Assembly (NCBI GenBank): GCA_025603075.1 | Contig: MU626449.1 | Coordinates: 1 to 37,142, forward strand | DNA length: 37,142 bases | Direction of reading: 5' to 3' | Origin: Neoconidiobolus thromboides FSU 785 | Taxonomy: Eukaryota; Fungi; Entomophthoromycota | Shown: positions 1,932 through 33,845 of the stretch, piece after piece | Layout: each line of letters starts with the position of its first letter | Position numbering within the stretch: the stretch's first letter is position 1 | Made by a program: the position numbers and the translations under genes | The notes under the pieces: model-generated | The model's input: only the letters and a program-made list of their open reading frames with translations | Database searches by the model: none | What the model was told of the DNA's origin: nothing

Positions 1932-2800
1932 TTATTCATTATTGCCAATTTTCACATACCCATTTGAGTTATCTTCAGTAGAAATAAAAAGACTTTCAAA
2001 CCCTTGAGTTGTTTCACATTGGATACTCTTATGATCATTTTTTCCACAATGGATACATTTAACCTCAGGTGGTTCATATATACAAATGGCTAAAGGAAGA
2101 TCTTTGCCAACTAAAAATTTATTTGGTATAAGGAATACTACTGCACCATCAGTGTAATAAATTTTCTCATTATCTAATTCTTGAGTACATAATATAACTT
2201 TTCCATAGATGCTAAATCTAGCTTTCAACTTTTACTCTAATTCTTTTCGAATAAACTGATCTCCAAAGTTTAATATAGTTAAACGCATAATAATTTCTGA
2301 AATATCCCATGCTTTATAAGTTTCAACTTTATATCCATTGACTTCCCATTCCTGATTTAAAGCAGATTCTCTATCTTCTTCACTTTTAAATCCAATTTCA
2401 AGCTTACTTTTTCTTTTGATCTTAATCATTAGATGATATTTAAGCTTTTCGATTACTAATTTAGCATAGTTATTCATACTATGCTCTTGAAAACCAATAG
2501 TTGATAAATCCATCATTATTGCGCGTTGAAGCGTTGAAGCATTGCTCTATAAATACCATATATCTCATCTAAAGTACTTAAATTAACAGCATTTGAAGGA
2601 AATGGGGATGTCAATGGAGTTGCAAATGTAGATTTAAATTCAAATACTGGTTTAAGTGGTGTTGAAGAGCTAGGACTATGCCCAAATATAGATTGGGGTC
2701 CAGGCCCAAATATATAGGAAGGCCGCTTACCTTTGTTAATAAAACTCGTACCAATTTTTACTTTATCCAAAATATAATATTTCTTTATTAAAATATACAA
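1932..2800 (-). pseudogene. Non-LTR retrotransposon ORF1 (gag)-like pseudogene with CCHC knuckle, copy A
   Basis: Three track ORFs (2516-2800, 2232-2516, 1932-2228) join across one frameshift and one in-frame TAA. Contains LEIGFKSEEDRESALNQEWEVNGY, MRLTILNFG, FSIYGKV and CIHCGKNDHKSIQC (CX2CX4HX4C). Confidence 0.8.
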
Positions 2801-2941
2801 AAGAACTTGATCTTAAAGTTAGCTCTTTGGGGTTATTGTACCAATTAACCAATCAAGTATCATAATTTAATATGGAGCATAAGAACAAAATAAAGGAGTG
2901 AGATCACAGTAAAAATAAAGACAGCTAAAAATTCATATTAT

Positions 2942-3041
2942 GGGGGTGTGTTTTTGTATTTGTGAATTTTACTAACAATTTTTCCACTCAAATAGCGCTT
3001 AGAAGACAGAAGAAAGTAATGAAGCCAAAAAAAGCAGCCCC
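2942..3041 (-). mobile_element. MITE copy
   Basis: Consensus match; flanks TTAT/ATAT. Shares the diagnostic CACAAATAC variant with the copy at 18511. Confidence 0.9.
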
Positions 3042-3241
3042 ATATATAATATTTAGAGTCAAAAAAGTTTGTGAAAACAATAAATGAAAACTCTTTTAAT
3101 AAAATACTTATTTCAAAGAAAGCCGTTTGCTTCAACGATAGAGAATGGTTAGTTTTTCAAAGGATAAAGCACTGACGTAACAGTATTTGGTTATTGGTAG
3201 TAAAACTAAACACCAATCATTAGACAGGTAAAAAATCATAT

Positions 3242-3338
3242 GGGGATGTTTTTTTTGGCTTCATTGTTTTTCCCATCTTTAGGCATTATTTAAGCGAAAA
3301 ATTGTTAGCAAAATTCTTAAACACAAAAATACATCCCC
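3242..3338 (+). mobile_element. MITE copy
   Basis: Perfect GGGGATGT/ACATCCCC ends; TSD ATAT. Confidence 0.92.
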
Positions 3339-3761
3339 ATATATTAACTAAAAGCGACCATTAATATAAAACTTAAGAGTTACACGTTATATTGTTTTGA
3401 TATTTCTGTAGTGTACATTGCTCTAGCATGTATTATTTATGCCAACATAGGATATTTATGTAATTGAACTCTAGATATAATTTGTTATTTTGCTACTTTG
3501 TTATCAAGGCTATATTTTTCTCTGATTCAACTAAGACTATTTTAATCGGTTGATTCTTAATAGTTTCACTTTATTTTTAAAAGGAATGCTAACTTGGATG
3601 CTGCTTTATACAAGGAAGACAAAATACAACAGCTCTTTATTTCTTTTTGAGTTACATACCTAAGGGAGTACTTGTTAAAAATTCATGAAATTTACTCTAA
3701 AAAGGTAACAACATTGGAAGTGATATAACATCCAGATCAAATAACCTTTTGCTAATGTTTT

Positions 3762-4161
3762 TGTGAAATCTGGTACTCAGGGTTTGGAGTCAAGAACAGC
3801 TATTGCTGGGTTGACTACACTATAAGTCGAAAGGTCTTAGTTTATGTAACTAAGATAGACTTGAATTATGAGGAATAGCACGTAATAGGTTACAAGCTAT
3901 ATAAGACAAATAGAATAGACAATACTAATGTAAAATCTATGTAAAATAATATTAAGAAAACTTAGTGGCTTTATTAAATGTTGGAGATATCAGGGATTAA
4001 TTCAGTTAAAAAGCCTCGAACTATTATACTCTGTAAACTCTTTTATACTCTGAAAAGTATAAGTATCAAAATGAGAAGATAATATTCTTTTGGGTGGAAC
4101 TAGAAATTCTCATAACAAATCAAAATAATTAACCATGGGACTGACGAAGCGATATTTCACA
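3762..4161. mobile_element. Solo-LTR-like repeat, copy 1 (400 bp)
   Basis: TG...CA termini with an 8-bp inverted repeat TGTGAAAT...ATTTCACA, flanked by GTTTT on both sides. Aligns end to end with 33380-33845. Confidence 0.75.
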
Positions 4162-4531
4162 GTTTTCTCATCAATTTTAAAAGTGTATAATCTAATGCGA
4201 AGGAGTAAAAATTCACAAGGTAAAATGGATTTCTAACTGGTAAAGAACACCTAAATAAGCAACAGGCCTGATACAACTTTTTATTAAAGTCATAAAATAT
4301 GGTAGTTTTATTGTATATCTAAGTTTCAATACTTAAAATACATGGTTATTATCAAAATACACAAGGTCATAAATCATAAGCTAAATTAGTTAAATCAAAG
4401 CTAGGCCATATGTGAAAAAGGCATCTAAGCAGCTAAACACATTAAATGATATTCAAAATAAAATAACAAATAAAAAGCAAAATATAACGTAATATCATAA
4501 AGCATGGACTTTAAATGATAATTATATATAT

Positions 4532-4627
4532 GGGGATGTGTTTTTTTGTTTAAGAATTTTATTACAATCTTTTCACTCAAATAGTGCTTAAAAAATGTAA
4601 AGGTAATGAAATCAAAAAAACATCCTC
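4532..4627 (-). mobile_element. MITE copy
   Basis: Consensus match; TSD ATAT. Confidence 0.9.
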
Positions 4628-4946
4628 ATATAATACTTCGGCTTATGTAAAATATGTAGTATTCATTTTTGGTTATGCTTAATAAAAATCTTGTCGCCGC
4701 TAAATAAGATATTAACACTTAGTTTAGTTTAGTTTAGTATAAAGCTTAAAATAAAATATACATTAAACTAAAGGTACCGATCTATATATTTTCAAAATCT
4801 GGTATTTATTAAAAATCAGATAAAGAACAACTTTGGTTTTGTTTATTACATATGATTTTAATATGTATTTATTGCTAAATTTTTTTTTTCAATACTAACA
4901 TAAATAGTAAAAATTAAGTAAAATTACAAAACTCAAATCACTAAAT

Positions 4947-5042
4947 GGGGATGTTTTTTTTGGTTTCATTATTTTTCCATTTCTTAAGCGCTATCTGAGT
5001 GGAAAATTTGTTAGTAAAATTCTTAAACACAAATACATCCTC
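4947..5042 (+). mobile_element. MITE copy
   Basis: Consensus match; flanks AAAT/ATTT (no perfect TSD). Confidence 0.9.
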
Positions 5043-5689
5043 ATTTGTTTAAAATTAAATTAACCAATCAAGTATATAAATGTGATATAAAATATTAAAA
5101 GAAAGATTAACCATAAATAAAAGAAATGGTATTCGAAAAGTTAAATTATATTACTTAAAAAGAATACCAATAAAACACTATATTTAGTATTGCATGTCCA
5201 GTCTAAAATAATGAACAAAGTATAATTTTTCAAAGGATAGAATATCAACTCATTTTTGCTTAATCAATAATATCAAAATTAAACCATAGTATTTTGCATA
5301 ATTATTGTATTTTCTTTATAAGCGATTTTTGCAAAAATATTCCATTTTTTAAAGAATCTGTTTAAAAAAAAACTAATTCTATAAATTATACAGCAGTTTC
5401 TGTTATATTGCTGTAGTACAAACAATAAACAAGGTTTCAATTTATATGTTTATACTAAACAAATGTTATTTTTTAATGAATCGAGGTGTACCGAATGGAT
5501 TTATAAATAGTTACTAAAAAGAGTATATCGAATATAAATAGAATAAAAAAATGAAAAATATTAACATTTAGTATCAAATTTAATACAATCTTAAAATAAA
5601 AAGATTAAAGAGAACTTTCAATAAAATAAACGTGATACAGAGTATTGTTCATTATTTTTTCATCCATTTTAAATACTATTCAAATTATG

Positions 5690-6320
5690 TCTAAATAAAT
5701 AAGTTTTCAAAGCCTTGAATTATTTCATATTGATCACCTCTATCAGCAGTACTTTCACAATGAATACATTTCCTTTGAACTGGTTCATACGCACAGGTAG
5801 CTAATCGAAGATTTTTGCTACTCAAAAGCTTAATTAGTATTACTAATTTATCAGATAATACATCATCCTTTGAAATAAGAAAAACTACTACATCATTACA
5901 ATGAAACTTATGAGTATAATTTAATGAGTGAATACAAGAAATTGTTCTTTCCTAAACATTAAATCTGTTTGTTAACTTCTCTTCTAATACTTTGCTATCA
6001 ATTTCATCTCCGAAAACCGATATAGCTAGGCACAAAGCAGTATCTTTGCGATATCATAATATGTATGTTTTTACTTCATGTTATTAAACTGACATTTCTG
6101 TTTAATACAAATTTTCGATTTTGCTCGCATTCGAGCCCAGTTTTGGATTTTCTTCTTACAATTTCACCTATTAAACAATGCCTTAAAACGAGTAGCTAAG
6201 TAGTCAGTACATTCATCGAAATCATGCGTTTCAATCCTCCTACTAGATACTTTATGATGATTAAAATAAGCCTTGCTAAAATACGTAATTACTCCGTATC
6301 GAAAGGATAATTTGTCAATG
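5690..6320 (-). pseudogene. ORF1-like pseudogene, copy B
   Basis: Manual translation gives SFRYGVITYFSK...FGDEIDSKVLEEKLTNRFNV*...NDVVVFLISKDDVLSDKLVI...LATCAYEPVQRKCIHCESTAD...IIQGFENLFI. Several stops and frameshifts; boundaries approximate. Confidence 0.75.
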
Positions 6321-6402
6321 TTATAACTCTAACCTATAGTAACTAAAATTTTAGAATGCGAAGTACATTTAAGTTTTAATTACTATTATCTTTGCTACTA
6401 AT

Positions 6403-6502
6403 GGGGATATTTTTTTTGGCTTTATCGCTTTTTCTATTCTTTAAGCGCTATTTGAGCGGAAAATTTGGTAGCAAAAATTCTTAAATGCAAAAATACATCC
6501 CC
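6403..6502 (+). mobile_element. MITE copy
   Basis: Consensus match; flanks TAAT/ATAT. Confidence 0.9.
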
Positions 6503-6824
6503 ATATACTAGTTGTGCTTACTAAATTTCTGTAGAGCAAAATCAAATTATAACGATATTGCTTGCCAAATTAGCCCTGGCTAAGTAAAAATTATTCTTCA
6601 ATGATCAAAAGGGATCAAAGATTATAATTCAATCGAGCATGATTTTTTGAGATTTCTGGTACTCAAAGAGTTAATAAAAAGTAGAGAAACGCAATAGAAT
6701 AATAGTGCGATCTAAGTAGGAATACAAGACACTAATAAAATAAATATATTTAATAATGAAAAGCAAGAATTTTTTTGAATTATTATAAGTATAGATTTGA
6801 AATACAAAATAAATCATAATATTT

Positions 6825-6921
6825 GGGGATGTATCTGTATTTAAGAATTTTACTAACAATTTTTCCACTCAAATAGCACTTAAAAGATGGAAAAAGTAAT
6901 GAAGCCAAAAAAAACATCCCC
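6825..6921 (-). mobile_element. MITE copy
   Basis: Perfect terminal repeats; flanks ATTT/ATCA. Confidence 0.9.
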
Positions 6922-7009
6922 ATCATTTGTTATATTCTAATGTATTTATTTATAATGCTTTAAAATCAATAAGCCTGTTATAAATATCTTATAAAATACT
7001 ATTTATTAT

Positions 7010-7775
7010 TTATTCTTCTTTCTCAACTCTCGAATTATTATTTGAACTGTTTACTGGGGGTTCGAATAATATTTGGTGATCATCAACTGTCTTGCCTCGA
7101 CTACTCATGTCCCTTCGACTTTTGGAATGAATACATTCAATCTCAACTAGTTTATGATTGTAAAGACTAGCTGCAAGATCTTTGTGTATTAAAGATCTAC
7201 TTGATACTACTAGCTTACTATATAGTACATCACCATTTAATGTGATAAATATATTTACATCATTCCTATGAAAACCACTGCAGCTATCTATAGTGAATAT
7301 GAGAGACACTCTTCCCATAAAGATTAAATCTAGCTTTTATATTTCCTTTAATTCATCACCAACGACATCATCTTCAGAAACTAACAGTGATGAATTCAAA
7401 ACAGGATCTAGATAGTACCATAATACATCTGCTTGTGCTTCATATCCCTTAAACTCTCATTTTATTTTCAAAGTATGGGAGTGTTTTTTTAACTTCATTA
7501 TTTTTTCCATTTTTTAAGCCCTATTTAAGCGGAAAATTTGTTAGTAAAATTCTTAAACATAAAAATACATCCCCGTATATTATTTACTTTATCCATCTTT
7601 AAGCTCAATTTCGAATGTTTGTTCTTTACGTATACCCATCAGACAATAGACTAGTTTTTTGATAATGAGTTCACTACATTCTCTCATATTACGTACTTCA
7701 AAGTTTTTATCAGGTGCTATACAACTTCTAAAATTAAGCTTAGACAAACTCAGTCTTATCTCATATAGATAAAAT
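7010..7775 (-). pseudogene. ORF1-like pseudogene, copy C, interrupted by a MITE at 7477-7574
   Basis: Track ORF 7010-7318 (LYSKLVV..KDL...ECIHS) plus upstream segments MRECSELIIKKLVYCLMGIRKEQTFEIELK and EFKGY...VVGDELKE. Removing the MITE plus one GTAT copy makes the flanking frames collinear. Confidence 0.75.
7477..7574 (+). mobile_element. MITE copy inserted in ORF1-like copy C
   Basis: TSD GTAT at 7473-7476 and 7575-7578. Confidence 0.92.
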
Positions 7776-8363
7776 GATATAAAATGTTCCTCGATCCTAC
7801 CATATTTAATAAATCTTAGAATTTAAAAATTATTTAAATATACTATTTACATCTTTTACTACTAATCATTTTAGCTTTAAACTTATTTTCTATTAACATA
7901 TCTTCTATAATTTCAGCTATAGACAAACATTTTTTTAATTTACTTTAGTACACTATTTATATTAAATCAATTTAGTAAATATTTGATTTCAGCTTAAATT
8001 GTTTTTTGATCACATATTAGATAAATAATGCTATCACGTTTTTTACTGTTTCAGTCTTTTAGCCATTTTTATGTTAGCTAAATAATGAAATTTTATTAGT
8101 CAATTTTATTAAACTGTGAATTTTGCTGTATATTCCAACTTATAGAAATACCAACATGATAATCTTTAGAAAAAAATACTATAGCATACGATAAACTCTA
8201 ACTATAAGATGAATTGTAAATTTAAATGGGATTTAATATAATAAAAGCTCAATATCACAAGATTGAAACGTTAAGTTATAACAAGTTAATATAATTTAGC
8301 GTATTTATTTATAATAATTTAAAATCAACAAGCTTTCTAAGGAAGATATAAAGTATTATCCTT

Positions 8364-9162
8364 CATTTGTCCTTCCTTTTAAACTTTCTCATAGCTGTCT
8401 AAATTGATATCTGTAAGCTCAAATAGCTTCTTTAAGCTATCAACTGTTTCACAGTGATTACTGTTGTGCGTATTACTTTTACAATGAATACATTTAACTT
8501 CAGCTGGTTCATAGCTACTTGTAGCTATTGGAAGATCCTTTCTAACTAAAAATTTATTTGGTATTATCAATTTACCAGCTAATACATTATTGTTTGGAAT
8601 AATGAAAACCACTACGTCGTATAAATAAAATTCATTATCAGTATCTAATAAATGAGTACACGAGATTTTTCCATAAATACTAAAACTAACTTTTAATTTC
8701 TCTTCCAATTCCTTACCAACAATATCACCTCCGAAATTAGAAACTATTAAACGCATAACAATTTCAGAATGATACCATAATCAGTACGTTTTAATTTTGT
8801 ACCCACGAAATTCCCACTTTTGTTTTAATGCATATTCTCTATCTTGCTCATTTTTAAATCCAATTTCTATTTTTTTTTCCTTTAAATTCTCCCATTGGAC
8901 GATAGTCTATTGTCTCAGTTATCTTTGTAACAAAATCAGAACAACTGATTGCCCCAGTTTCATGATGCCCTACTCCAGTTTGAAATGATGATGCTCCATG
9001 ATCATGAGAGTTAGCTCTAGAAAAATCCATCATAATTGCATATCGAAGGGATGTTCTATGAATGCTGTAATTTTCACCTATATTGTTTAAAAGCTTATTG
9101 GTTGCGGAAAAGTTTGATGAAGGTCCAAAATTGTTACATGATCTATTCATTTTAACTTTCAA
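8364..9162 (-). pseudogene. ORF1-like pseudogene, copy D (best preserved)
   Basis: ORF 8854-9162 (ENYSIHRTSLRYAIMMDFS), a frameshift in an A-run to IEIGFKNEQDREYALKQKWEFRGYKIKTY*, then ORF 8379-8756 with CIHCKSNTHNSNHC. Confidence 0.8.
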
Positions 9163-9535
9163 TCTTGTTTTTATTTATAGCACTATATTTTTAATTATTA
9201 AAGACAAACTTGAAAAAAGCTTAGATCTTAATGAGGAAATGACTTTATATAATTAAAATTATGCGATCGGAAAAATTGCAGCTAACTGGTAAAGGCTTTA
9301 ACACTATCAGTATTATAGTTTGTGAAAGTATAGAGCGGGCTCTCTCTTAGGTCATTTGAGGATCAAAAATCAACTTATCTTTATTTTCAGATTAATCATA
9401 TATACTATGTTTATCTTAGCTGTTTAAACTTTGACTAGACTTTTTAATAAATAACTTAATTTACAATCACAATACTTAAATGCTATGAAGTCCGACTATA
9501 TCAAAATTTATTTCATTATAAGTTGGAAGTTAAAT

Positions 9536-10451
9536 TTAATCTCTTAAAGCAGAAAGTCTAGCCCTCATATCATCCCAATCTTCGTCTTGAACTTGTTCTT
9601 GAATAGGTTCTTGGGTATCAGTCTGTAAAAAGATTAATATCATTTTAAAACATAATAAAACAAAGACATACTACCAACTCATTGTTGACTGGTTGTACTT
9701 CACCTAGGGCGCCTTGAAGTTTGATTTAGTTTCAAAATATTAATAGGTTAAAGTTAAAATAAATTTTTTACCTTCCGTTATTTCAAATAAGATTTTATTA
9801 ACTTCTTCTTCAGCTTCAGAATCAATTTCTTCCTCATCCAGCCCATCGATGGTATCTTCAATCATCTCTCCAATAATACCAGTCTAAAAATAGGTTAATC
9901 TTTTGTTTCTTATTTTTAAATCTTAAATTACTTTCATCAACTCTTTAGATAACTCCATCATCGCTTTATTGATCTCTGGTAACTTTACCAAATTATTAAC
10001 TAATTTCATGACCTCAGCACTCTTTTGTAAAGTACCTGACATCTTAGCCATAGCTAGCGTTAAAGTCTTAGCTCATTTTTTTCTCACTACAAAATTTTAA
10101 AAAATCATCCTTACCAGTTTGTTGTTGTAGTTGCATCATAATAGAATTCAATTGAGCTTTTGAAGTATGTAATCTTTGTTTATGCTTTCTAGTACGTACA
10201 AGCTCTTTAGCTAATATTTTACATGATATCATATCTTTTCTTTTAGCTACTTGTTTTATTGCCATTTTAGCTTTTTTTTCTTCACTTTCAATGCCACGTA
10301 TTTGACGATCAATCGTTCTTTCTTGCGTCCTTATTGTGGAGCGCCACTTTCTAAACTAGTTATTTTGTTAGCTGTGTTTGGATAAAATGGAGTCTAATGA
10401 GTTTACTAATTCATCTGGTGTGGGTTGTTTAAAAAATAAATTTTTTATCAT
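9536..10451 (-). CDS. VPS24: ESCRT-III subunit Vps24/CHMP3
   Basis: Six exons, approximately 10451-10407, 10355-10115, 10053-9932, 9883-9772, 9712-9672 and 9622-9536. Product: [29 protein letters not shown]...[10 protein letters not shown]...[12 protein letters not shown]...[18 protein letters not shown]...[19 protein letters not shown]...[14 protein letters not shown]...[10 protein letters not shown]. Start codon slightly uncertain. Confidence 0.92.
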
Positions 10452-10675
10452 TAAAAAAATAAAGTTTCTATTTATTCTTTTTTTTGTCAATTTACAGTTC
10501 TAAAAATTTCACCTTTATCTAAAATTAGATTTAACAATTTGCCATAAACATAAAATAGATAAAAATAAATGTATAAAAATTTATTATATCGAATAACATT
10601 GATTTTGTAAAGAAAATAAAAATTAATTTTTGATTAAGATAAGAATAGTGAGTGTTAAAATTATAACTCTAAATA

Positions 10676-11395
10676 TTAGTCTTTAACGTCATCACAACCA
10701 CATTTCCAAACATCTAAAACCGTTGAGCAATTAAAACTAGGTTTTTTAAGTCGAGCGTTAACGATATTATGAGCTTCACAAGCCCACTGTGAGGCAGATT
10801 CTCTTGAATCAACCTAAGATCTAATTAATACAAATTATAAATAAGAAAAAAGACATTACCTTTGGTGGAAGGGTAGCTAAAACACCTTGGAAATGTCTAG
10901 CACTAAAATAAACAAAAAGTTTGATAAAATAATTTAACTATTTAATAAAATTGATAAAAAAACTTACCAATCCCCACAAGGATATAACCTAGAAAATAGA
11001 TAGATAAATGTCTTTAATGCATCTTGTTCATCTTTGGTTGGCGTTACTGGAAATCTAGCTGCCATTGTATGAATCAGACGCCATGATGATTTACCTAGCT
11101 CAGCTCTAAATATTTCATTTAGTGTCAAATTTAATTTACTAAGATATTACGAATATTCTTACTTGATAGTAGCATTCCCTAATTCGGACATAATAGTATC
11201 TCCTAACTCAGGTTTATTATTACCAAAGAACCAATTTTTACTGTTATCTTCATATTCATTAAGGTATAAAGAAGATACCCTTCGATCCACCTCTTTATTG
11301 ATATTGATTTTATTGCTGACTACCAAATGAACAACTATACTTAAACTTATAATTGATAATAAAACTATGATCAGTAATCGGGAGCAACGTATCAT
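10676..11395 (-). CDS. ERV2: FAD-linked sulfhydryl oxidase of the Erv2 type (membrane-anchored, ER)
   Basis: Exons 11395-11163, 11105-10968, 10902-10860 and 10813-10676. N-terminal TM segment, AELGKSSWRLIHTMAARFP, YPCGDCARHF (CxxC split by an intron), QWACEAHNIVNARLKKP and the C-terminal CGC motif typical of Erv2. Confidence 0.92.
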
Positions 11396-11984
11396 CTTAT
11401 TTTTTTTTAAAATAAATAGTATAAAAGTTGTATGATTTAGACTATATTCTGTATGGTTAAAAGTGGCTTTATATACTCGTACTACTTTGGTTGTAACCAA
11501 TTAGATGTTAGGTAGTTAATTAGTTTTATTTTTAGTTATGCTGGCTTCATAAATATTTATAAATTGAAGTTGATCATTTTTGATGCTGGTTAAAAATAGA
11601 GCTAATAGTTTAATTCTAATACGTTTAATCTTTCAATTATTGGCTATTTAAGGTTAACTTATTCTAAGAATAATTAAAAATAGATTTTATAAAATGTTAT
11701 AGTTATAAAATGGTACTAGTTGAAAGATGATTGATATTATCCAATGTTGCACTAACAAAATAATAAATGGTATCTCTACAATACATAAAATAACTAATGA
11801 CTATCTATCGTTCAAAAGCTTATTCGATTTAATATTCAGTAATAATAAATAATTAATTCTGGGTTATTGAGTTTCCATTCAAAAAACTGTTTAAAATTTA
11901 TGCAATTTGATAAATAAGCATAAAACTAAAAACCAAGCAATTTTCACTTTTAGTTTCTTTATAAAAAACAACAAAGAATAAAAA

Positions 11985-12931
11985 ATGACTACCGCCGCCA
12001 GACCAACCTTTGATCCAGCCAAGGGAAAAGATAGCTCCAACCCAACCGCACAAACTCATTCTCGTGATAATCCATCCCATACTAAGCTTAAATACAGGTA
12101 GTAAAAACCTAAAGACCTTATAATTTAATAACTAATAGATTCAATAGAAAAGAAGGTCAAGAAGAGTATATTAACTTAGATGAAGAAGATTTAAAGAATC
12201 AATTATTAAGTGCAGAAAGAGAGCATTTGATAAAAACCGGTAAAATTGAAGAGGATAAAGAATATACTCATGAACAAAGAGCACTTATTGAACACTTTGA
12301 AAAAAACGAAGTTGCTGAGAAAGAATTAAATGAAAATAGAGAGGATGGGGAAGTGGATGATGAAGAAGATGATGAAGAGGAAGAAGAGCTAGAAGCTGAA
12401 GTTGCTAAAAGAGCGTAAATTTTGATTCATGATTTACAAAATGATAATACTAAATTAATTGTAGTGCTCAAGTAGCTTCTGATGAAGATGAAGAAGAAGA
12501 AGATGAGGAGGAAGATGAAGAAGAAGATACAGAAGCCTTAATGAGAGAACTTGAAAAAATTAAAAAAGAAAGAGCTGAAGCTAGAGAGAGAAAAGTAAGT
12601 AGATTTAAATTAAAATAAATGTTATCGTTAACCATTTTCATAAAGGAAAGAGAAAAAGCAGAAGCAGAAAAATTAAAAGAAGAAGAAATATTAAAAGGAA
12701 ATCCACTTTTAAATATTTCGGAAAATCAAGAGTTTACTGTAAAGAGAAGGTGATTAGTAAATTGATTTAGTTGTTTTTATATTAAAATTTTACTTTTATT
12801 TTAGATGGGATGATGATGTTATTTTTAAAAACCAGGCTAGAGGAGAAGATGATAAACCTAAAAAGCGATTTATTAATGATATGTTAAGATCGGATTTTCA
12901 TCGTAAATTCATGGATAAATATATTCGTTAA
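11985..12931 (+). CDS. CWC15: Pre-mRNA splicing factor Cwc15
   Basis: Starts [14 protein letters not shown]...HTKLKYR, has an acidic middle with [16 protein letters not shown], and ends [13 protein letters not shown]...[21 protein letters not shown]. Several short GT-AG introns. Confidence 0.95.
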
Positions 12932-13341
12932 TTGAGGATTTTAATTTTAAATACGACGGATTATTGTATTTTATATGTTTATAAAAGCATTTGGAACATT
13001 GATTGCTTTTCTTTTGATTATTTGAAGAAATAAATACTTTTTTAGTAGTTTTGAAGGATACAACTTGATAGGCTTTTTATTGTGATATGTTTATTAATTT
13101 TGAATAGGAATTATTTTATCATTTGTCTTAAATAACTTGTATTATAATAAAAATAAGATTTCTCAAATTTGCTATATTTTATTTTATCTTATTTTTAAAT
13201 AATACAAGCAGGATCTCATTTATCAATGTCAATATAAAATAAAAATAAGTTCTATAAATTCCAAATTTGTAAAAAAACATCATCAATTTTTGTTCTGAAA
13301 GAGCAGCCCATTTTACTCTTAAACAACTAAACCTAACTCCA

Positions 13342-16104
13342 ATGGACACGACAATAGCGACTAGATATTCCTTTAGCCCAATAAAAATATCGTTGACATT
13401 TAATATAAAATACACTGAAGAAGATAAAGAAGGTCAAAACTTAAATTTTCAATTAAATAAAGAGGAACATATCTTAGATCATTTAAAATATTTCATGTAT
13501 GATAATGAGATTGATTTAGGTTTACTGGATGATTTCTTAAATACTATTTATGATGAAATTGATACCAAGATGAAGCTGAGGGTTGAAGAATATGTTGAGA
13601 ATGGTAATTTAGTTGTTTTTGTTTTTTATTTAAATAGTGATTAAATACATTTAAAAGTAATGGAAGATATCGATATTGAAATGTTAAGTAGAAAGTTTGA
13701 TAGCTTATTTAACAAAAAAGAAATAGTGGAGGCTAAAGTAAGCTCAATTTATTTACATCTACTACTCAAATTTATATATTAATATTCATAAGATAAATTT
13801 TGAATTAGCATTTAAAAAATTATATTATTCAAACTATTCAGAACCTATCTTTGAGTTTTTAGTTAAATTGATAACAGAATATTCAAGGGGCTTAGAATTA
13901 AGAAATAGGGATTGGAGCGAGCAAATAGAAATTATCAAGTTTAAGTAAGTTTTTTAAATCTTACATAGTAAATAATAAAAAGTTAGGATATCTTCAATAT
14001 TAAAAGTCATATTAACTTTTTATTTAGATATGAAGAGGATAACTCGGACATATTTAGGGAAATTAGTGAAGCTAGACATTCTCAAAAAATTTTACAACAT
14101 GAAAAAGTAATTTTTATTAGTAATTACTATGATTAAGTTTATCTAAGTTATTATTATCAAGGATATTGAAATGATCAAGGCCACTTGGAGTTCCGAAATT
14201 AAAGAAATGCAAGAAAATCAAAAGTTAGAATTTCAAGAATTTATTATACAAATTTATTATCATTATATAGTTTATCATTATAAACTTAGTCAACTAGAAG
14301 AAGAGTGTGGAAGTTATAGTTTATTATCAAATTATACAGAAAGTGAAGAAAATTTCATTTTAAGTTTAATGAACAAAATGGAAGATAGTGAGCCTTCGAT
14401 GGATAATATAAGCGAACTCCCTATTGTTGTATTTAAACAAAAGTTTGAAGAAAATCGTTCAACTTCTAAAGAACTTCGAAAATTGATAGACTCTTTAATA
14501 CAGGATAAAGTGGATATTCCAATAAAATCAAAGATTAAACCGGTAATAAACAGTAGCTACTTTTTTATTATAAAGTTGATAAAACCTTTAGGAGTTAATC
14601 CGAGATATTATGGATGTTATGGGAACAAGTGAAATATTAGCCCGCTCCGCTTTGGAAATGTGTGATAGTGATAAAGTAAATAAATTATTTTTCTGTTTGT
14701 AATTCAGTAATTAGATTATGTTTATTAGAACAGTGCTGTTTTATTACTCATGGACTCATATAGTAAAGTAGAGCAATATGCTAAAGATAAGCAATTAGCA
14801 GGACAAAAATCAACGCCTAATTCGAATGATAATAATAACAATAATACTTCAAGGAATAGATCAAATAACAATAATAATAATGGAAGATTTAATACATTTC
14901 AACAAAATCATAAAGCAAACTTATTAAATTTAGCTAATAATGCTAAAAATTGGTTTAAAAAATCAATTGAGAATTTAGTCAATGACGATGATAACGATTC
15001 AATAATTGATAGCAATTTAAGAGCTGGAAATAATTTTAGAATATTAGAAGAAACTTCAATTATTCCACTTGGTTCCAATATACGTACTAACTTTAAATTT
15101 ATATTAACTAATTTTGATGTTTTAAATATTACATTTCAATCAGAAAAGGAACTATTTCAAGCTAGACTAAGACAATTGTATGAAATCTATGATAAAAAAT
15201 TAAACGCTAAAGTCGTATTTGTTCCAATTGATAAAGTTAAACAATATCATTTGGGAAATGTGGCTAATACAGGTAATTAATAATAATGTATTTATATTAT
15301 TTAATATGATAAAATAGAACTATTTGAAAAATGTAAAAAATCTACCGAACTTCATTTTCCAACAATAAATGAACAATTAAGAGTATTAACAGAAACTTAT
15401 TTGGATAATTTAAATGAGGATGAAAATGAAAACATTCAGGAAGGTAAAATTTATTGACAAGTTATAAACTAGTACAAAAAAATTGATAATTTTAAATAGG
15501 CGAATTCTTTGTAACAAGACATTCGAATTTATTCAATATACAATTAGTAGTTCATATAATGTTAAATTTAGAGAATGATTTGTTGTTAGAAGATATTAAT
15601 CAAAAGTCTGCCTTAATAATAGGCTTTAGAAATTTGATTAGTTCAAGTTCAAAATTAAAGATCCATAGTTTACAAATACCAATTATATCACCAATAGTAA
15701 TAACTAATAGTAGTAATAATAATAATTTATCTGTTAGTAATAATAACAATTTATCAATATCACCCTCTTCCTCACTTGCTCAAAAATTAGCCGCATCTAC
15801 AAATGGAAATAAATTTAACAAAGAACTAAGCCGATCTAGCTCTCCATCCTCTACAGGTACCAAAAGAATTGAAGAATTTTTTAAATGTCTAAAAAATATG
15901 TTTATTGAATTTTCAAGGACAGCTACCCCCTTTATTGATCCATTTGGTAATAGTTTAGATGAACAAACTTTGCCCACAATTACTTTTGTATTACCAAATG
16001 AAAATACAGGGAAACTGAGTGGTAGTTTGTTAAGCTTTAATGCCAGCTTTAATGCAGTAAAGAATTCTTTTGGGATTGTTTTTAAAGCTAATGATGCGGA
16101 ATAA
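13342..16104 (+). CDS. FERRY3: FERRY complex subunit 3 (C12orf4 / DUF2362) homolog, multi-exon, with UBA-like insert
   Basis: Track ORFs 13342, 14171, 14750 and 15559 splice into one gene. Motifs ATWSSEIKEMQENQKLEFQEFIIQIY, EETSIIPLGSNIRTNFKF, STELHFPTINEQL, GEFFVTRHSNL, IIGFRNLI, RIEEFFKCLK and TITFVLP are collinear with the C12orf4 sequence as recalled. Confidence 0.85.
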
Positions 16105-16629
16105 AATGAAAGTAATATTTTTATTTTGGCTTGTGGCTTATTGTACTTAGTAATAACAAACATATAAAATAAATTAGTTTCCTATCTTATAATAAGCTTG
16201 AAAACCAATTGAAAAATGTATAATTTTAACTTATCTTTAATATATGGTACCTGTGTTTTATCTTTATTATTTTAATATTTTATTACTCTATTATTATTCT
16301 CTTATCTAAAACTACAGAATCATATTTTCTATATTAATTATATAAAGAACAAATAAAGGCTAAAATATTGAAAATATTACTATTTGATTGTGTGTGATTA
16401 AAAGAAACATTTGAGGCTCATATTAAATATTAAATAATATAGTATAATACAATATAAAAAGCGACTTAGAGTAAATCTGAGTGTGTTTTTTTGAAAATTT
16501 TAATTTTAATTTTAATTATGCTACTGAGGTAAATAGTTTTTAAATTTAAAATTTAAACGGGTAATAGTGACAATAGTAATTATAAAATAAAAGAATTTTT
16601 TTCACAATTTAAAAGTTGGGCTACTCGAA

Positions 16630-17400
16630 GTGAAAACTATGTTATTTATAGATCAATTTGTAGATATGGCATAAGAATGGATCTTTCTAAGATTAGCTTT
16701 AGTTAACATGATATGTCGGGTAAAGAACCAGAAATGCATGGTATGAAGGACTGCACTAACTATATAGTCAGTAAGCCGAGTTATCGACTAATAAGTGAGC
16801 TTAAAGATTAAAAGTCTGAATTTAGATCTAGAACTGAAAAAGACTAAAAGTAAGTATATGAGGATTTTTTTTGATTTCATCACTTTTTCCATTTTTAAGC
16901 GCTATTTGAACAGATTGTTAGTAAAATTCTTAAAAAAATACATCCCCATATATTAAATCAAAATTGTAAAATTGAGGGTTACAGTATAAAAAACAACTAG
17001 ACTTTACCATTATTAGGATATTAATCCACATGCTAAATTAACATGTCAGGGTGGTAGACTTCTTGGTGAAGAATTGGAAGAGCCATTAGAACCAAAAGTT
17101 AATTTTTATTGAAATGTCATTTCAACTCACTTACTCGGTCTCAATAATATTTTCTACTCTAATAATATAATTATATTCCCTATTCCAAACAATAATATAT
17201 TATCTGACAAACTATCAATATCAGATACTTTTTCAATTAAAAAAGATTTTCCTTTATGCACTTGCTATGTTGAGCTAACCAATCTTGAATGCTTTCATTG
17301 TAGAAGTATTTCCCACATTACCAATCAATGTTTAATAGTTGATAACTATGAAAAATTGTTTGATTTAGCAGAAAATAAATTGACAGAAATTATAAAATAA
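16630..17400 (+). pseudogene. ORF1-like pseudogene, copy E, interrupted by a MITE at 16860-16947
   Basis: ENYVIYRSICRYGIRMDLSK...; after the MITE, LNQNCKIEGY; the frame from 17050 gives LLGEELEE..FY*..THLL..IPNNNILSDKLSI..KDFPL...CFHCRSISHITNQC (17290-17331). Confidence 0.8.
16860..16947 (+). mobile_element. MITE copy inserted in ORF1-like copy E
   Basis: Small internal deletions; TSD ATAT. Confidence 0.88.
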
Positions 17401-17810
17401 TTGAGTAAAGTAGAAAACGAAGTATAATAATATGTGATATCTTTGGTGGGTTTATTGATTTGAGCATATTATAAATAAATATATTAGGCTATAATAATTA
17501 TTTATTATTTGTTTTTACTTTAAATTTATATCATATATGTTATTTTTATAAGACATTTTAAATTTTATACAGTATAGTTTGCTTCAATAAGCTTATAAAA
17601 ATTATTAAATATATACATCCAGATTTTATTTTCATTTGTATGATACTATAACTATATAAAAAGTGAATAGAAGACTGAAATGTTATAAAAATATTATTAT
17701 ACCATTACTCATATGTAATCAAAAAGCAAATCAAGTTGGGGCTAAAAATTCCCAAGGTTAACTCTTAGTATAAATAGAATATTATGGTAAATTAAAAGGC
17801 TTTTTTATAT

Positions 17811-17909
17811 GGGAGTGTTTTTTTTTACTTCATTATTTTTTCCATTTTTAACTACTACTTAAGGCGGAAAATTTGTTAGTAAAATTCTTAAACACAAAAA
17901 TACATCCCC
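17811..17909 (+). mobile_element. MITE copy
   Basis: GGGAGTGT-type end; TSD ATAT. Confidence 0.9.
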
Positions 17910-18039
17910 ATATATTATACCTAAAGTTATAAGAGCGCTAAAATAACAACATGCATAGAAAGCTAAGATGTATATTAAAAATAATGGTTAGTAAAGTTTA
18001 ACTGATTTTCCTCACATTCTAAGACTATTTTTTAGATAA

Positions 18040-18830
18040 AAGTCATGAAATCTATAGATCCCCTTTTCGCCATGGAATAATGATGGATTTGTCTGATATT
18101 AACTTTCAAAAAATTGAAACATTTGATAAATTTATTGATGCCATTAATATGGGAGATTGTACCAATTGTATGTCTAAAAGGTTAGGCTATCATTCAATGG
18201 GCGAATATGGTAGCCAAACGTTTGAAATCGAGCCTAAGAACGAAGAGGGCAGACAAGATGCGTTAAATGAAAGACGGTGCATCAATGGGTATGTTTTTAT
18301 CTCATACCTGCTGTGATATTATTAAGGTCCTGTTATGGCTTTAACGCTATCGATCTTTAAAAGCAAGGTTGTTGATAAAGAGTTAGAGAGAAAGCTAAAA
18401 TTAAGATTTGGTACTTATCGGAAAGTTGTTGCATATACTCATTTACTCGAAGATAAATCCAGCTTTTATGCTAGTAGTGTAATGATAGTTCTTGTCCAAA
18501 ATAATGATACGCGGATGTTTTCCTTGGCTTCATTATTTTTTCCGTCTTTTAAGCGCTATTTGAGTGGAAAAATCGTTAGTAAAATCCACAAATACAAAAA
18601 TACATCCCAATACCTTATCTGGAAAATTATCTATACCAAATAAGTTTCTAATTAGTAAAAATCTTCTACTGGTTATTTCCACATATAAAGTAGTTGCCCT
18701 CGAGTATTTTCATTAGAGAAGTACTGAATATAAAGATGGCCAATGTGGTATAGTTGATATCTATGAAAAGTTATTTTAGCCTATGGAAGCTAATTTGAAT
18801 AATTATAAGAAAGTTGAAGAAGAGGGATAA
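18040..18830 (+). pseudogene. ORF1-like pseudogene, copy F, interrupted by a MITE at 18511-18609
   Basis: MMDLS..., TFEIEPKNEEGRQDALNE...NGY, KELERKLK..FGTYRKV..THLL. After MITE removal it reads VQNNDTLSGKLSIPNKFL...EKLF...NYKKVEEEG*. Confidence 0.8.
18511..18609 (+). mobile_element. MITE copy inserted in ORF1-like copy F
   Basis: TSD ATAC at 18507-18510 and 18610-18613. Confidence 0.92.
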
Positions 18831-18912
18831 TGAAAAACATCAACTTAATGACATATTTATCAAGTTTATTAAACTTGTAGCATCATAAATAAACATGCTA
18901 GAAATAACATAC

Positions 18913-19009
18913 GGGGCTGTTTTTTTTGATTTCATTATTTTTCCATCTTTCAAGTACTATTTGAGTGAAAAGATTGCAGTAAAATTCTCAAACAAAAAAA
19001 CACATCCCC
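18913..19009 (+). mobile_element. MITE copy
   Basis: Consensus match; flanks ATAC/ATAT. Confidence 0.9.
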
Positions 19010-20017
19010 ATATATTTATAGATTATTCTAAATTTTAAACTATAATCTTAATTATTCCTTTTATATATTTTATATTTTATATTTTATATATTGTAATTTA
19101 ATTCAACAAAGTTAATAAGTCGATTGGGTATGTATATTCAGATTTTATTGATTTCTACTTGTATAACGTTTTAACTCAGGCTATTTCATACTCACAAACT
19201 AAATAAAGTTTCCCTATATCCTAAGAGCAATTATATTCCTAAAAGATTTATTAAAAACATGATTAATAGTTTAAAGATAGGGGAGTGTTAGCCACTTACT
19301 ACATGAATCACATCTATTGTAATTGAAAAGAATCTATATTTGGCCAAACAAAAACATCAACAAAATATTTAAATGACAAAATTCTATTTTTGATCCTTTT
19401 TTTACAAATAATAAAAACAGTATTGTTCTCACAGACTTGTAAAATTATATACAACCAGTCTCTTTAGCTAACGTCTGTCGTTGCATTTGTTAAAAGCCCT
19501 CCATCTAACGTATCATTATGCTCTCTATACTTCAACTTTATTAACAAACTACTCCCTGATCAGCCTGGGTATATCTAGACCCTCTTCAGATCTACTGAAA
19601 TCTAGAAACTTCACATAACCTTACACAATATCAAATTCAAAACTATTTCATCTCCCCTTCCTACTAATTCCATTTTCCTTGAATGGAAATGACTTACACC
19701 CAAAAAAAACGTTTACATTATAACAATTGCTCTTAATTCATCTTCTGACAAGGACTAAGTCTGTGGACTTTCTTTTTTTCTGATCTTACCAAGCTCTCTT
19801 CATATCCCAGTTTCCGCTAATTTTTCATGTATGTTGTCATTTTTAACAAATAAATCTAAGACTTATTAATATTAATAAGTACGTTTTAAAAACGATATTG
19901 CCAAAATTAATATTTAAAAAAAGGCTGTTCTTATATCTCTTTCTAAGTTTTGAATCGATAAGTTGAAGATTTTAACTTGAAGCAGAATTTCAAATATTGA
20001 ATATAATTTTACTATTT

Positions 20018-20963: not shown

Positions 20964-21130
20964 AAAAATGTCATTTTTTGTTTCATATTGTTATTTAATA
21001 TGATAACTTTTAATAAATTATTTTAATAATAATTTTATGTTATGTCAAATTTAAAAACGTATATAAATACATTGATTTTACAATGAAATATTTATAATAA
21101 TTATATTTAATATTGTTGATCAATATAAAA

Positions 21131-21796
21131 ATGAAATATTCTTTTATTTTATTCGGTTTATCTTTAATCTCATTAAACATCAATGCTCTTCCAATTGATG
21201 AGGAAGCTTCTTCAGTTGTCAATAATATTCAACTTTCTCTAAAAGATCTCAATCTTGATTCAGAAACACTTCATTCAATTGAAGATCGTTTAAATAAACA
21301 AAAGCAATCCAAACCATCCAAAACTGAAATTAAGCAGGAAGTAAAGATTCAATCTAAATTAAATGAGACTAAAGTAAATGAAGAATTAAAAGAAATGATC
21401 TGTAGAGTGAATAAATTACGATCAGACAATGGTAAAGAACTGCTTTTGGTAGATAATCGTTTAATGATAGCAGCCCAAAAACATAGTGAAGCTCAAGAAA
21501 GTAATAAAAAAATGTCACATAAAGGATTTACTAAAGAAACTGAAGAATTTGGCGATCGATTTAAATTAGAAGGCTATGCTTTTACTGGAGCTGCAGAGAA
21601 TGTAGCTGTAGGTCAAAAATCTGTTAAAGCAGTTATGAAATCATGGGAAGATTCACCAGGTCATCGTAATAATATACTTGGTAATTATGAATGCTTTGGT
21701 TATGGTAAAAAAAAGGATTATTGGACTCAAGCTTTTGCTTCTGGAGCAGACTGTATTGGTTATGAAAAAATCGATTGTAATGGAGTTTCATTTTGA
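21131..21796 (+). CDS. Secreted CAP/SCP (PR-1-like, YkwD-type) domain protein, intronless
   Basis: Signal peptide MKYSFILFGLSLISLNINA, then VNKLRSDNGKELL..DNRLMIAAQKHSEAQ...MSH...DRF...AAENVAVGQ..VKAVMKSWEDSPGHRNNILG. The ATG at 21131 is preferred over the track start at 21113. Confidence 0.9.
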   Translation: MKYSFILFGLSLISLNINALPIDEEASSVVNNIQLSLKDLNLDSETLHSIEDRLNKQKQSKPSKTEIKQEVKIQSKLNETKVNEELKEMICRVNKLRSDNGKELLLVDNRLMIAAQKHSEAQESNKKMSHKGFTKETEEFGDRFKLEGYAFTGAAENVAVGQKSVKAVMKSWEDSPGHRNNILGNYECFGYGKKKDYWTQAFASGADCIGYEKIDCNGVSF

Positions 21797-22026: not shown

Positions 22027-22432
22027 AATTAAATTAATACTTTATGATTGCGTGTTTTAATTTGCCTATGTTTATTCAATGTAGTATACTTTCATAAATA
22101 ATAATGCTAATGTGTAATTAAGGCAAATATAAAAATTTTATAAGCCATGATAGTATTTTTGTATTTATTTTTTAAATTGCATAAATACAAAACAATATGA
22201 GGGTGTTTTTTTAGCTTCATCACTTTTTCAATTAAATTAATACTTTATGATTGCGTGTTTTAATTTGCCTATGTTTATTCAATGTAGTATACTTTCATAA
22301 ATAATAATGCTAATGTGTAATTAAGGCAAATATAAAAATTTTATAAGCCATGATAGTATTTTTGTATTTATTTTTTAAATTGCATAAATACAAAACAATA
22401 TGAGGGTGTTTTTTTAGCTTCATCACTTTTTC
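22027..22432. repeat. Perfect tandem duplication, 2 x 203 bp
   Basis: 22027-22229 is repeated at 22230-22432. Each unit ends 31 bp inside a MITE end. Confidence 0.93.
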
Positions 22433-25941: not shown

Positions 25942-26034
25942 GTGGATATATTTTTTTGTAAGAATTTTACTAACAATCTTTCCACTCAAATAGTGCTTAA
26001 GAATCGAAAAAGTGATGAAACCAAAAAATACCCT
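25942..26034 (-). mobile_element. MITE copy, left arm of an inverted pair
   Basis: Consensus match; no clear TSD. Confidence 0.88.
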
Positions 26035-26086
26035 AATATAATAGTTTAGTGTAATTTGAAGCCTTATTAAGATTATTTGTATTAAT

Positions 26087-26180
26087 GGGGCTATTTTGTC
26101 TTCATTACTTTTTCGATTCTTAAGCACTATTTGAGTGGAAAGATTGTTAGTAAAATTCTTAAACAAAAAAATACATCCCC
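26087..26180 (+). mobile_element. MITE copy, right arm of an inverted pair
   Basis: Consensus match; no clear TSD. Confidence 0.88.
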
Positions 26181-26740
26181 CGTAATTTGTTTTTATAATA
26201 GAAACGCTTAAATTATTGAAAGTAAAAAAAAACAAAATTGAAACAACTGAAGACTATAAATAATACAATAAAGGTCAATATTAAAGTAGCTTGATTTCTA
26301 AAACTATAATAGCATAATTTATCCATTTGATTCAAGTTCATTACAATTATAAAATTCAACCAATTTTACACATACATTAAAGTCAAAAATATATAAAACT
26401 AACTGCAATCTATTCTTCAATCTTTCTTATTATAGAAATATGAGTAAAAGAACAAAAGTAATGTGCCACCAGACCTTACCTCTTTATCGTTATGTTATCT
26501 GCTTCATTTGTCTTGTTTTGTTTAAAGCCCTTTGTTTTATTATTTACTATTAAATATATCAACGCTTAGAAATCAACTCTTTTAAAGTTTAAAAGATATT
26601 TGATTTGTTACTGCTTATAAAATTTAGAATTTGAAGTTATCATTACAACTTTTATTGTTCAACAATAAAAAATGCCCAATAGATGGACTTAACCTATTAA
26701 TTGTATCAGTTTATAAAAGCTTACTTCATATAATTTATAC

Positions 26741-32693: not shown

Positions 32694-33056
32694 ATGGCAT
32701 CTAACATCAATCTAACCACATCTGTATCTTCAAAAGAAAATTCAACAATCAACGGCTTAACAATAAAAAAATCAAAAAATTCTATAGTCAGTTCATTATC
32801 ATACACTTCAACTAATACCAATTTCTCTGAGTTTAGTGAGTTTCCAATGCCCTTATATTCATTATCATCAGTAAAAAACGAAAAAAAAAGCCTCAGCAAA
32901 GAATCTTTTAGTACTTATTTTAAGAATTCTAATTCTACTTCTAATTCATTATCACCACCTCCCCCTGTTTATGATCTCCCAATGCCTCTGTTTTCTATTA
33001 TTACTATATTCAAAGCTATTTACAAACTAACTAAAAGCAAGTCTACTGAATATTAA
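32694..33056 (+). CDS. Hypothetical Ser-rich 120-aa protein
   Basis: Uninterrupted ATG-initiated ORF in otherwise stop-rich DNA, with the repeated motif PMPLYS/PMPLFS. No family recognised. Confidence 0.35.
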   Translation: MASNINLTTSVSSKENSTINGLTIKKSKNSIVSSLSYTSTNTNFSEFSEFPMPLYSLSSVKNEKKSLSKESFSTYFKNSNSTSNSLSPPPPVYDLPMPLFSIITIFKAIYKLTKSKSTEY

Positions 33057-33379
33057 TTGCATAATAAAATGACTGTGTTATTTAATAAAAAATAGTATGC
33101 TGGTCTTACTATGTATTTATGCTTCAAAAAAAAAGAATAGGTGAGATAATTTAGAAATGGAGTTGAGATAGTTAAGAGTTAAAATAAATAAAAGTCAAAA
33201 ATTCAATATGATTGTAGATATTATATATTTTTAAAATAAAAATCGACTTCACTTTAATTATACATTGTAATTATGTAAATTTTATAATAAAGATTAGTAA
33301 TATTTTTTATTTAAAAAAAAGGAAGAGATAAACAGTAACAACAAGCTATAGTAGTGATAATAAATAATTTGTTATATAT

Positions 33380-33845
33380 TGTGAAATGTGGTACCCAGTG
33401 ATTAGAGTCAAAAACAGCTATTGTCTGGCTGACTACACTATAAGTCGAAAGGTCTTAGTTTATGTGACTAAGATAGACTTGAATTATGAGGAATGGCACA
33501 TAATAGGCTACGAACCATGTAAGACAATTAGAATAGATAATACTACTGTAAAATCTACCTAAAATACTATTAAGTAAACTTAGTGGCTTTATTAAATGTA
33601 CGAGATATCAGGGAATAATTCAGTTAAAAAGCCTCGAGTTACTATGTTCCAAAATCTCTTTTATACTCCAACAAGTATGGGTATCAAAATGGAGATATAA
33701 TGTCCTTGATAGTCATATGACATAGATTCTCATAGCAAGACAAAATAAGAACATGGGATTGATTGTCTTTGAACTCAAGAACACAGCAGCTTAAGTGATT
33801 ATTGTGCTATAATCAATCGTGGAGCTGACAAAGCGATATTTCGCA
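33380..33845. mobile_element. Solo-LTR-like repeat, copy 2 (466 bp), same orientation as copy 1
   Basis: TGTGAAAT...ATTTCGCA termini flanked by ATAT/ATAT. A 36-bp block at 33430-33465 is identical to 3812-3847. Carries an extra ~60-70 bp near its 3' end. Confidence 0.75.

Follow-up and report, generated by a model that had tools for sequence, protein, structure and literature searches.

A family of ORF1-like genes with tandem RRM folds and a CCHC knuckle, disabled in all six copies on a contig of Neoconidiobolus thromboides

Six disabled gene copies on contig MU626449.1

The window analysed here is the whole of contig MU626449.1 (C192; 37,142 bp) of the fungus Neoconidiobolus thromboides FSU 785, whose assembly comprises 24.6 Mb in 799 contigs with a G+C content of 26%. 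It carries six diverged copies of a gene family that resembles the first open reading frame (ORF1) of long interspersed nuclear elements (LINEs). A preliminary description of this DNA had reported the six homologs, a motif order common to them and the disabled state of every copy, and all three observations hold. Exactly six family loci were recovered by three-frame translation, six-frame HMMER searches and tblastn with an open paralogue from contig C265; the shared motif order is real in the family alignments; and the copies are broken by stops and frameshifts, with miniature inverted-repeat transposable elements (MITEs) inside w3, w5 and w6. The E-values of the loci range from 1e-6 to 1e-81, so the homology is beyond chance.

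The best-preserved copy, w1 (1932..2800, minus strand; core 1974–2543), is a pseudogene with tandem RNA recognition motifs (RRMs) and a CCHC knuckle, and shares 44% amino acid identity over 211 aa with the open C265 paralogue (E 4e-55). Its lesions are a TAA codon at 2232 and, in the N-terminal part upstream of ~2543, a change of frame. Since homologous residues continue in frame past the stop, the break is a nonsense mutation and not an intron. The second copy, w2 (5690..6330, minus strand; core 5697–6074, reaching ~6330), has stops at 6054 and 5952, further stops in the tail, and frameshifts. The third, w3 (7010..7775, minus strand; core 7061–7765), contains an in-frame MITE at 7474–7577 and a stop at 7337. 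In w4 (8364..9162, minus strand; core 8409–9081) there is a stop at 8781 and a frameshift near 8872–8885, and the C-terminal 125 aa are still open (8379–8756). The two plus-strand copies are w5 (16630..17400; core 16632–17373), with stops at 16704, 16809, 17014 and 17110 and an internal MITE at 16855–16950, and w6 (18029..18830; core 18029–18776), with stops at 18314, 18323 and 18714 and an internal MITE at 18507–18612. Each pseudogene holds 1–5 in-frame stops, and the six copies are now without any function.

Two of the loci are represented by deposited NCBI/JGI gene models, P0003 for w1 and P0005 for w6, in which artificial introns bypass the stops, the other defects and the MITE. These models splice around stop codons, and the w1 and w6 loci should be marked as pseudogenes in the annotation.

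Copy spacing and the shared 3′ end

The tandem copies follow each other with a period of 1.32–1.43 kb, leaving spacers of ~0.4–0.6 kb. Homology between copies is limited to the ORF and ~100 bp of 3′ sequence, with 65–77% nucleotide identity, and it ends ~25 nt past a conserved 3′ motif that contains ATAAATAAA. Behind w3 this non-coding motif (6930..6978, minus strand) reads GCTTATTGATTT...ATTATAAATAAATA...TTAGA and resembles a poly(A) signal. The same motif lies downstream of w4 (8290..8340, minus strand), w5 (17447..17500, plus strand) and w6 (18860..18912, plus strand). No A-rich tail is visible after the shared 3′ end in the copies compared.

The MITE is ~100 bp long and occupies 24 sites in the window that are 75–90% alike, with 5–15 copies in each of the other contig stretches examined. 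Besides those inside w3, w5 and w6, the sites include 1265–1360, 2926–3060 and the neighbours 25955–26052 and 26094–26195. In w3 and w6, a MITE also borders directly on the conserved 3′ motif, at corresponding positions in the two copies; the one after w6 lies directly behind the motif at 18898–19012. The 75–90% likeness of the MITE copies points to a spread after the duplication of the gene family, which fits a recent collapse.

Protein architecture and fold

The family protein has ~250 aa and consists of a short N-terminal segment, two non-canonical RRMs, one CX2CX4HX4C knuckle and a short helical tail. The knuckle motif was found in w1, w4, w5, the C265c copy and a paralogue on contig C342. 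A common end point 25–35 residues after the knuckle had been described before; the short tail is confirmed, and its length is corrected to ~22–27 residues (14 in the C265 copy).

The fold was predicted with AlphaFold2 from the open 222-codon C265 paralogue and an alignment of 14 naturally open sequences, with neither a consensus nor a mended frame. An earlier run on nine close paralogues gave an unusable model with a mean predicted local distance difference test score (pLDDT) of 40; distant homologues were needed for a good one. The resulting model (pLDDT 78, predicted template modelling score 0.64) shows two beta-alpha-beta-beta-alpha-beta units, the knuckle and a short helix. The RRM folds stop ~10 residues before CX2CX4HX4C, and the model contains no coiled coil. 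The best Foldseek matches in PDB are the tandem RRMs of HuC, HuR, HuD, Sxl and Hrp1 (E ~1e-6, probability 1.0), and a weak profile match was obtained to the RRM of RBM4B (E 0.012). The model and the tandem-RRM matches show that the earlier reading of the layout as RRM-like plus CCHC was right, with two RRM folds in place of one.

Pfam scans covered the window pieces, the open paralogues and the outside homologues, at E up to 1 or 10. The zinc knuckle (zf-CCHC) alone was recognised, and weakly; Transposase_22 (PF02994), DUF4283 and RBD_ZCCHC3 were absent. The window family had no RRM_1 match; the best score was 13 bits, in P0010, and two distant relatives from Mucorales just passed the gathering score with 21–22 bits against a cut-off of 20.7. 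The RRM fold is nonetheless present in the predicted structure. Judging from this fold, a functional protein would bind single-stranded RNA through its tandem RRMs and knuckle, in the manner of a chaperone or packaging protein.

The preliminary description had likened the architecture to ORF1p of the L1/Tx1 clade. The LINE ORF1 layout stands; the type does not. The type II ORF1p of mammalian L1, with a coiled coil, a single RRM and a C-terminal domain, was rejected for the family, since PF02994 is unmatched and the model has two RRMs and a knuckle without a coiled coil. The layout is that of type I ORF1p in the classification of Khazina and Weichenrieder, in which one or more RRMs stand immediately upstream of a CCHC knuckle and which takes in the clades I, Jockey, R1, Tad1, plant L1 and L2 (PMC4120745).

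Family members in the rest of the genome

A profile search of the assembly retrieved 28 pieces of the family at ~18–20 loci. The subfamily to which the window copies belong has roughly 14 members: six on C192, four on C265, two on C102 and others on C20 and C23. One family protein encoded on C265 has an exact NCBI match (KAI9291625.1). A second subfamily has two RRM-like domains and no knuckle; it is found as a tandem pair at C203:16275-18067, at C154:42854-43546 and at ~48.8–49.4 kb of C93, and includes P0012 (KAI9292270.1). In the C203 pair, the stop codon directly follows what would be the first knuckle Cys (…EVVYC-stop).

At C342:7606-9434 lies a paralogue of three exons that appears intact and has a long N-terminal part rich in Asn. 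Splicing is needed in this gene because no in-frame ATG in the last exon precedes the conserved domain. The two putative introns measure 55 and 58 nt, and both end in AAG instead of the usual YAG.

Search for LINE machinery

The earlier observation that no endonuclease (EN) or reverse transcriptase (RT) frame follows any of the copies was extended from the window to the whole genome with RVT_1, Exo_endo_phos and Exo_endo_phos_2 scans, and it holds at both scales. RVT_1 has only two matches in 24.6 Mb, a Ty3/gypsy gag-pol gene on C168 and telomerase on C40. Exo_endo_phos_2 has no match in the whole assembly. Exo_endo_phos matches occur on five contigs, none of which bears family copies; those with internal stops (C63, C24 and C397) look like host nucleases, and the ones on C14 and C112 were left uninspected. 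Neither the window copies nor the genome scans revealed RT or EN downstream of a family copy. Moreover, because neighbouring copies are only 1.32–1.43 kb apart, ORF2 never lay between tandem copies. The Ty3/gypsy gag-pol gene, the sole RVT_1-type retroelement in the assembly, sits at the end of C168 (L027:2342-6802) and encodes 1,486 aa including a dUTPase domain.

Homologs in other fungi and a probable link to Grem-type ORF1

Relatives of the family are scarce. A HMMER search against 1.84 billion representative proteins gave 17 matches only, consisting of models from the same genome, two proteins of Conidiobolus coronatus (annotated as KXN70332.1 and KXN69172.1) and a few JGI/Logan proteins of 430–475 aa that possess one knuckle or two as well as long disordered tails. 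A word-based protein search with the family alignment returned three proteins. The DNA around two of the relatives, P0010 and P0020, had no match in two metagenome scans. In protein language-model comparisons, two family members lie nearest to clusters of multi-copy arthropod CCHC proteins and of ZCCHC3-type proteins, in which two RNA-binding domains precede CCHC knuckles; we treat this as a lead only.

One of the 17 matches, P0016, belongs to a multi-copy family of Mucorales (Absidia, Chlamydoabsidia, Halteromyces, Cunninghamella and Rhizopus). Its members include BC941DRAFT_259914 of Chlamydoabsidia padenii, BCR42DRAFT_338924 of Absidia repens and G6F60_011347 of Rhizopus arrhizus. In hhalign, the Conidiobolus-type family aligns with the Mucorales family over 154 colinear columns with 97% probability (E 9.5e-11), and in both the motif [KR]I[HN]R precedes strand 1. 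The Mucorales proteins have 440–505 aa with two adjacent knuckles at approximately aa 235–285, and several are encoded on contigs of 5.5–6.2 kb. Grem-LINE1 of Mucor, an L1-clade element of 5,966 bp that is also found in Absidia padenii and A. repens, encodes an ORF1 of 515 aa with knuckles at aa 247–285 (10.1101/706580, including suppl. tables 5 and 6). Because length, knuckle positions and contig sizes match those of Grem-LINE1, we infer that the Mucorales family is Grem-type ORF1. The canonical multi-RRM protein P0015 also matched the family profile (E 4e-5), so part of the profile signal is generic RRM similarity. Collectively, these comparisons suggest that the family probably shares ancestry with type I LINE ORF1, specifically with the L1-clade Grem type of early-diverging fungi.

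Selection and decay of the copies

A tree of eleven copies is star-like, with terminal branches of 0.27–0.73, unsupported internal branches and no grouping by locus, which points to one old burst. The synonymous rate (dS) between copies is ~1, and no pair is more than 77% identical.

The comparison of non-synonymous to synonymous rates (dN/dS) among copies, which the preliminary description had proposed as a check, gave 0.24–0.37 for pairs among w1, w4, w5 and C265c. Neutral decay simulated under an AT-biased model (200 runs) gave mean values of 0.85–0.89 with a minimum of 0.44. Between w1 and w4, the p-distances by codon position are 0.28, 0.25 and 0.47. The number of stops is also low. A neutral branch of 0.3 is expected to bring 5–14 in-frame stops into 222 codons, and the 1–5 that the copies show correspond to a neutral span of ~0.02–0.1. 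With dN/dS below neutral and too few stops, the copies appear to have stayed open through the greater part of the time since duplication. This is good evidence, short of proof, that purifying selection once acted on the branches leading to single copies, at least the better-preserved ones.

Origin of the family

We consider it probable that the family is a stand-alone, ORF1-related RNA-binding family that spread by copying at the DNA level, was long maintained by selection in several of its copies, and recently turned into pseudogenes throughout the window-type subfamily. In Neoconidiobolus it occurs only as stand-alone units of ~1.3 kb, each followed by a 3′ motif of its own that resembles a poly(A) signal. 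These units probably multiplied through tandem or segmental duplications during a single old burst, and many of them were presumably held open by purifying selection during most of their history, as the better-preserved copies indicate. The copies would then have been disabled independently and fairly recently through point stops, frameshifts and insertions of the ~100-bp MITE. The preliminary description had left the choice between an ORF1-only retroelement and a domesticated family undergoing birth and death. The second option is favoured because of the tandem spacing of 1.3–1.4 kb and because visible poly(A), young copies and an RT source are lacking; it is favoured further by the signs of past purifying selection, the apparently intact multi-exon paralogue on C342 and the homologues in C. 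coronatus. The first option fails on tail, partner RT, dispersal, young copies and neutrality of branches.

Several points weigh against a selected stand-alone family. A star-like tree is equally expected from a burst of transposition. The selection signal is clear only in the better-preserved copies and weaker in w2 and w3, dS is saturated in a genome of 26% G+C, and codon alignments based on tblastn favour conserved stretches, which is why we rate the selection evidence as good and not as proof. No clearly intact copy is present among the ~14 members of the window subfamily, which is unusual for a host family, and in the open C265 copy the conserved N-terminus is preceded neither by a start codon nor by an evident start exon. 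The assembly is in 799 contigs, and unassembled repeats could conceal a LINE. Finally, the link to LINE ORF1 is indirect, as it passes through the proposed identity of the Mucorales family with Grem-LINE1 ORF1, and the Pfam models for ORF1 and ZCCHC3 are unmatched in the family scans.

That the family has no retroelement ancestry at all, being an ordinary host RNA-binding family that converged on the RRM-RRM-knuckle order (as in RBM4/Lark), expanded in tandem and then decayed, seems to us unlikely. The structural matches to cellular tandem RRMs, the weak RBM4B match, the multi-exon gene on C342, the knuckle-less subfamily on C203 and C154, the lack of any match to an ORF1 Pfam family and the similarity of P0015 to the profile would all suit such an origin. 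It sits poorly, however, with the profile alignment to the Mucorales family, which is colinear over the full length and takes in both the [KR]I[HN]R motif and the knuckle; members of that family fit Grem-LINE1 ORF1 in length, knuckle positions and contigs of 5.5–6.2 kb. The patchy, multi-copy distribution also speaks against it, as do, as a lead only, the nearest language-model clusters of two members, which are of arthropod CCHC type and of ZCCHC3 type and not RRM_1 host proteins.

It is quite unlikely, in our assessment, that the copies are fossils of an ORF1-only, non-autonomous retroelement of the HAL1 or HeT-A kind, moved in trans by a LINE that has since vanished. There is a precedent in HAL1, cited in PMC4161310. 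The type I ORF1 architecture, the single burst suggested by the star-like tree, the death of every copy, the position of the copies in MITE-rich islands, and the common 3′ end ~25 nt past an AATAAA-type motif, where an mRNA would end, are all consistent with such an element. However, no RT or EN remnant was found, even though ORF2 exceeds ORF1 in length and conservation and ORF1 relics of the same age can still be recognised, and the autonomous partner is absent from the 799-contig assembly. The copies form head-to-tail arrays with a period of 1.3–1.4 kb and not dispersed insertions, they carry no A-rich tail, and no pair exceeds 77% identity. Their stops are too few and the dN/dS of their terminal branches lies well below neutral, whereas copies dead on arrival would tend to ~1.

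The last candidate, that the units are remains of full-length LINEs after deletion of ORF2, has the ORF1-like architecture as its one argument and is close to refuted by the absence of any ORF2 trace in all six window copies and in every copy elsewhere, by spacers of ~0.4–0.6 kb, and by the single common 3′ end just after the ORF.

Comparison with known ORF1-type and knuckle proteins

The probable stand-alone family shares with type I ORF1p the position of the RRMs directly before a gag-like CCHC knuckle, here as two RRMs and one knuckle, and its RRMs are likewise non-canonical and escape Pfam RRM_1. It differs in that it is not the first ORF of an element and no ORF2 follows, in having one knuckle where many type I ORF1p have three, and in that no sequence-level match to a described ORF1 family was obtained for it.

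Grem-LINE1, from Mucorales and Umbelopsidales, also comes from early-diverging fungi, and its ORF1 has ~515 aa and adjacent CCHC knuckles. It is an autonomous element of ~6 kb with an ORF2 comprising APE, RT and zf-RVT, and its pericentromeric copies are at least 90% alike (10.1101/706580, PMC7377519). The window copies, in contrast, are ORF1-only units of 1.3 kb that are 65–77% alike and have one knuckle and a short tail.

HAL1 ('half-L1') and HeT-A consist of ORF1 or gag only, as do the window units, and HeT-A forms head-to-tail arrays. Both need an RT in the same genome and have poly(A) ends, whereas the window family has no RT source, no A-tail and signs of selection on single copies.

L1TD1, a stand-alone gene of mammals, descends from L1 ORF1; certain lineages have lost it repeatedly, and a defence against L1 has been proposed for it (PMC4161310). 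It resembles the window family in being a stand-alone ORF1-type gene. However, L1TD1 is single-copy, of type II and clearly homologous to ORF1, whereas the fungal family is multi-copy, of type I and of probable ORF1 ancestry only.

ZCCHC3 combines two RNA-binding domains with CCHC knuckles and restricts L1 (PMC10351740, PMC9580041). It has the same domain order as the window family, and for two family members ZCCHC3-type clusters are among the closest in language-model comparison (scores 0.90–0.91). Unlike the family, it is a vertebrate protein with three knuckles, and the Pfam models RBD_ZCCHC3_1st and RBD_ZCCHC3_2nd are unmatched in the window family. The ZCCHC3 papers cited here contain no statement of an ORF1 origin for ZCCHC3, and the link between the two is a language-model lead only.

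RBM4/Lark, a host regulator of splicing and translation, also has the RRM-RRM-CCHC order and appears both in the RBM4B profile match (E 0.012) and as an ESM Atlas structural neighbour. It differs in having canonical RRM_1 domains and in being a conserved single-copy gene, whereas the window family is orphan-like, multi-copy and mostly dead.

An anti-transposon function of the family, which the preliminary description had raised, is pure speculation. One could imagine, by analogy with L1TD1 and ZCCHC3, that the host kept the ORF1-derived proteins as decoys or restriction factors against LINEs, that the extinction of the LINEs relaxed selection, and that the ~14 copies then died within a short span, aided by the MITE. 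We regard this as a long shot. If it were true, the family would document, in nature, how a defence family collapses once its target is lost.

Stand-alone genes and units made from LINE ORF1 are known in mammals (L1TD1, HAL1); for fungi, we found none described. N. thromboides, in which no LINE is detectable, has about twenty ORF1-like units, several of which appear to have been held by selection long after they were copied, before a whole subfamily died. If ancestry and timing hold, the 24.6-Mb genome together with the culturable relative C. coronatus, which has intact homologues, would offer a compact system for studying the role of an ORF1-type RNA chaperone in a host and its fate after loss of the parent element. 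The analysis adds the six-copy array, a homologous family in Mucorales that is likely Grem-type ORF1, the ruling out of LINE ORF2 across the genome, and evidence for a long open phase of the copies.

Larger arrangements and other repeats

On C192, C265 and C102, oppositely oriented groups of copies flank 7–12 kb of unrelated ORFs, the groups being divergent on C192 and C102 and convergent on C265; this arrangement may be a coincidence. The possibility that these inverted arrays form the borders of one large mobile unit was considered and rejected, as the centres hold unrelated ORFs that look like ordinary host genes. A telomeric array of the HeT-A kind was likewise rejected, as no telomere repeats were found at the contig ends.

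Other paralogous segments with 74–81% identity connect the window with two of the contigs mentioned above, namely 36314-37127 with C342:13421-14233 and 32767-33033 with C265:19936-20202. The segments linking C192, C265 and C342 include a small ORF with an LPMPLYSLS motif. They hint at an old segmental duplication between these regions.

Two further repeats were found in the window. A non-coding repeat of ~385 bp occurs at 3761–4144 and 33379–33762; its two copies are 82% identical and contain no ORF in any frame, and it may be a fragment of another element. A perfect direct repeat of 163 bp (22027–22189 and 22230–22392; identity 100%, separation 40 bp) is found a short way downstream of a gene for a secreted CAP-domain protein (21113–21796).

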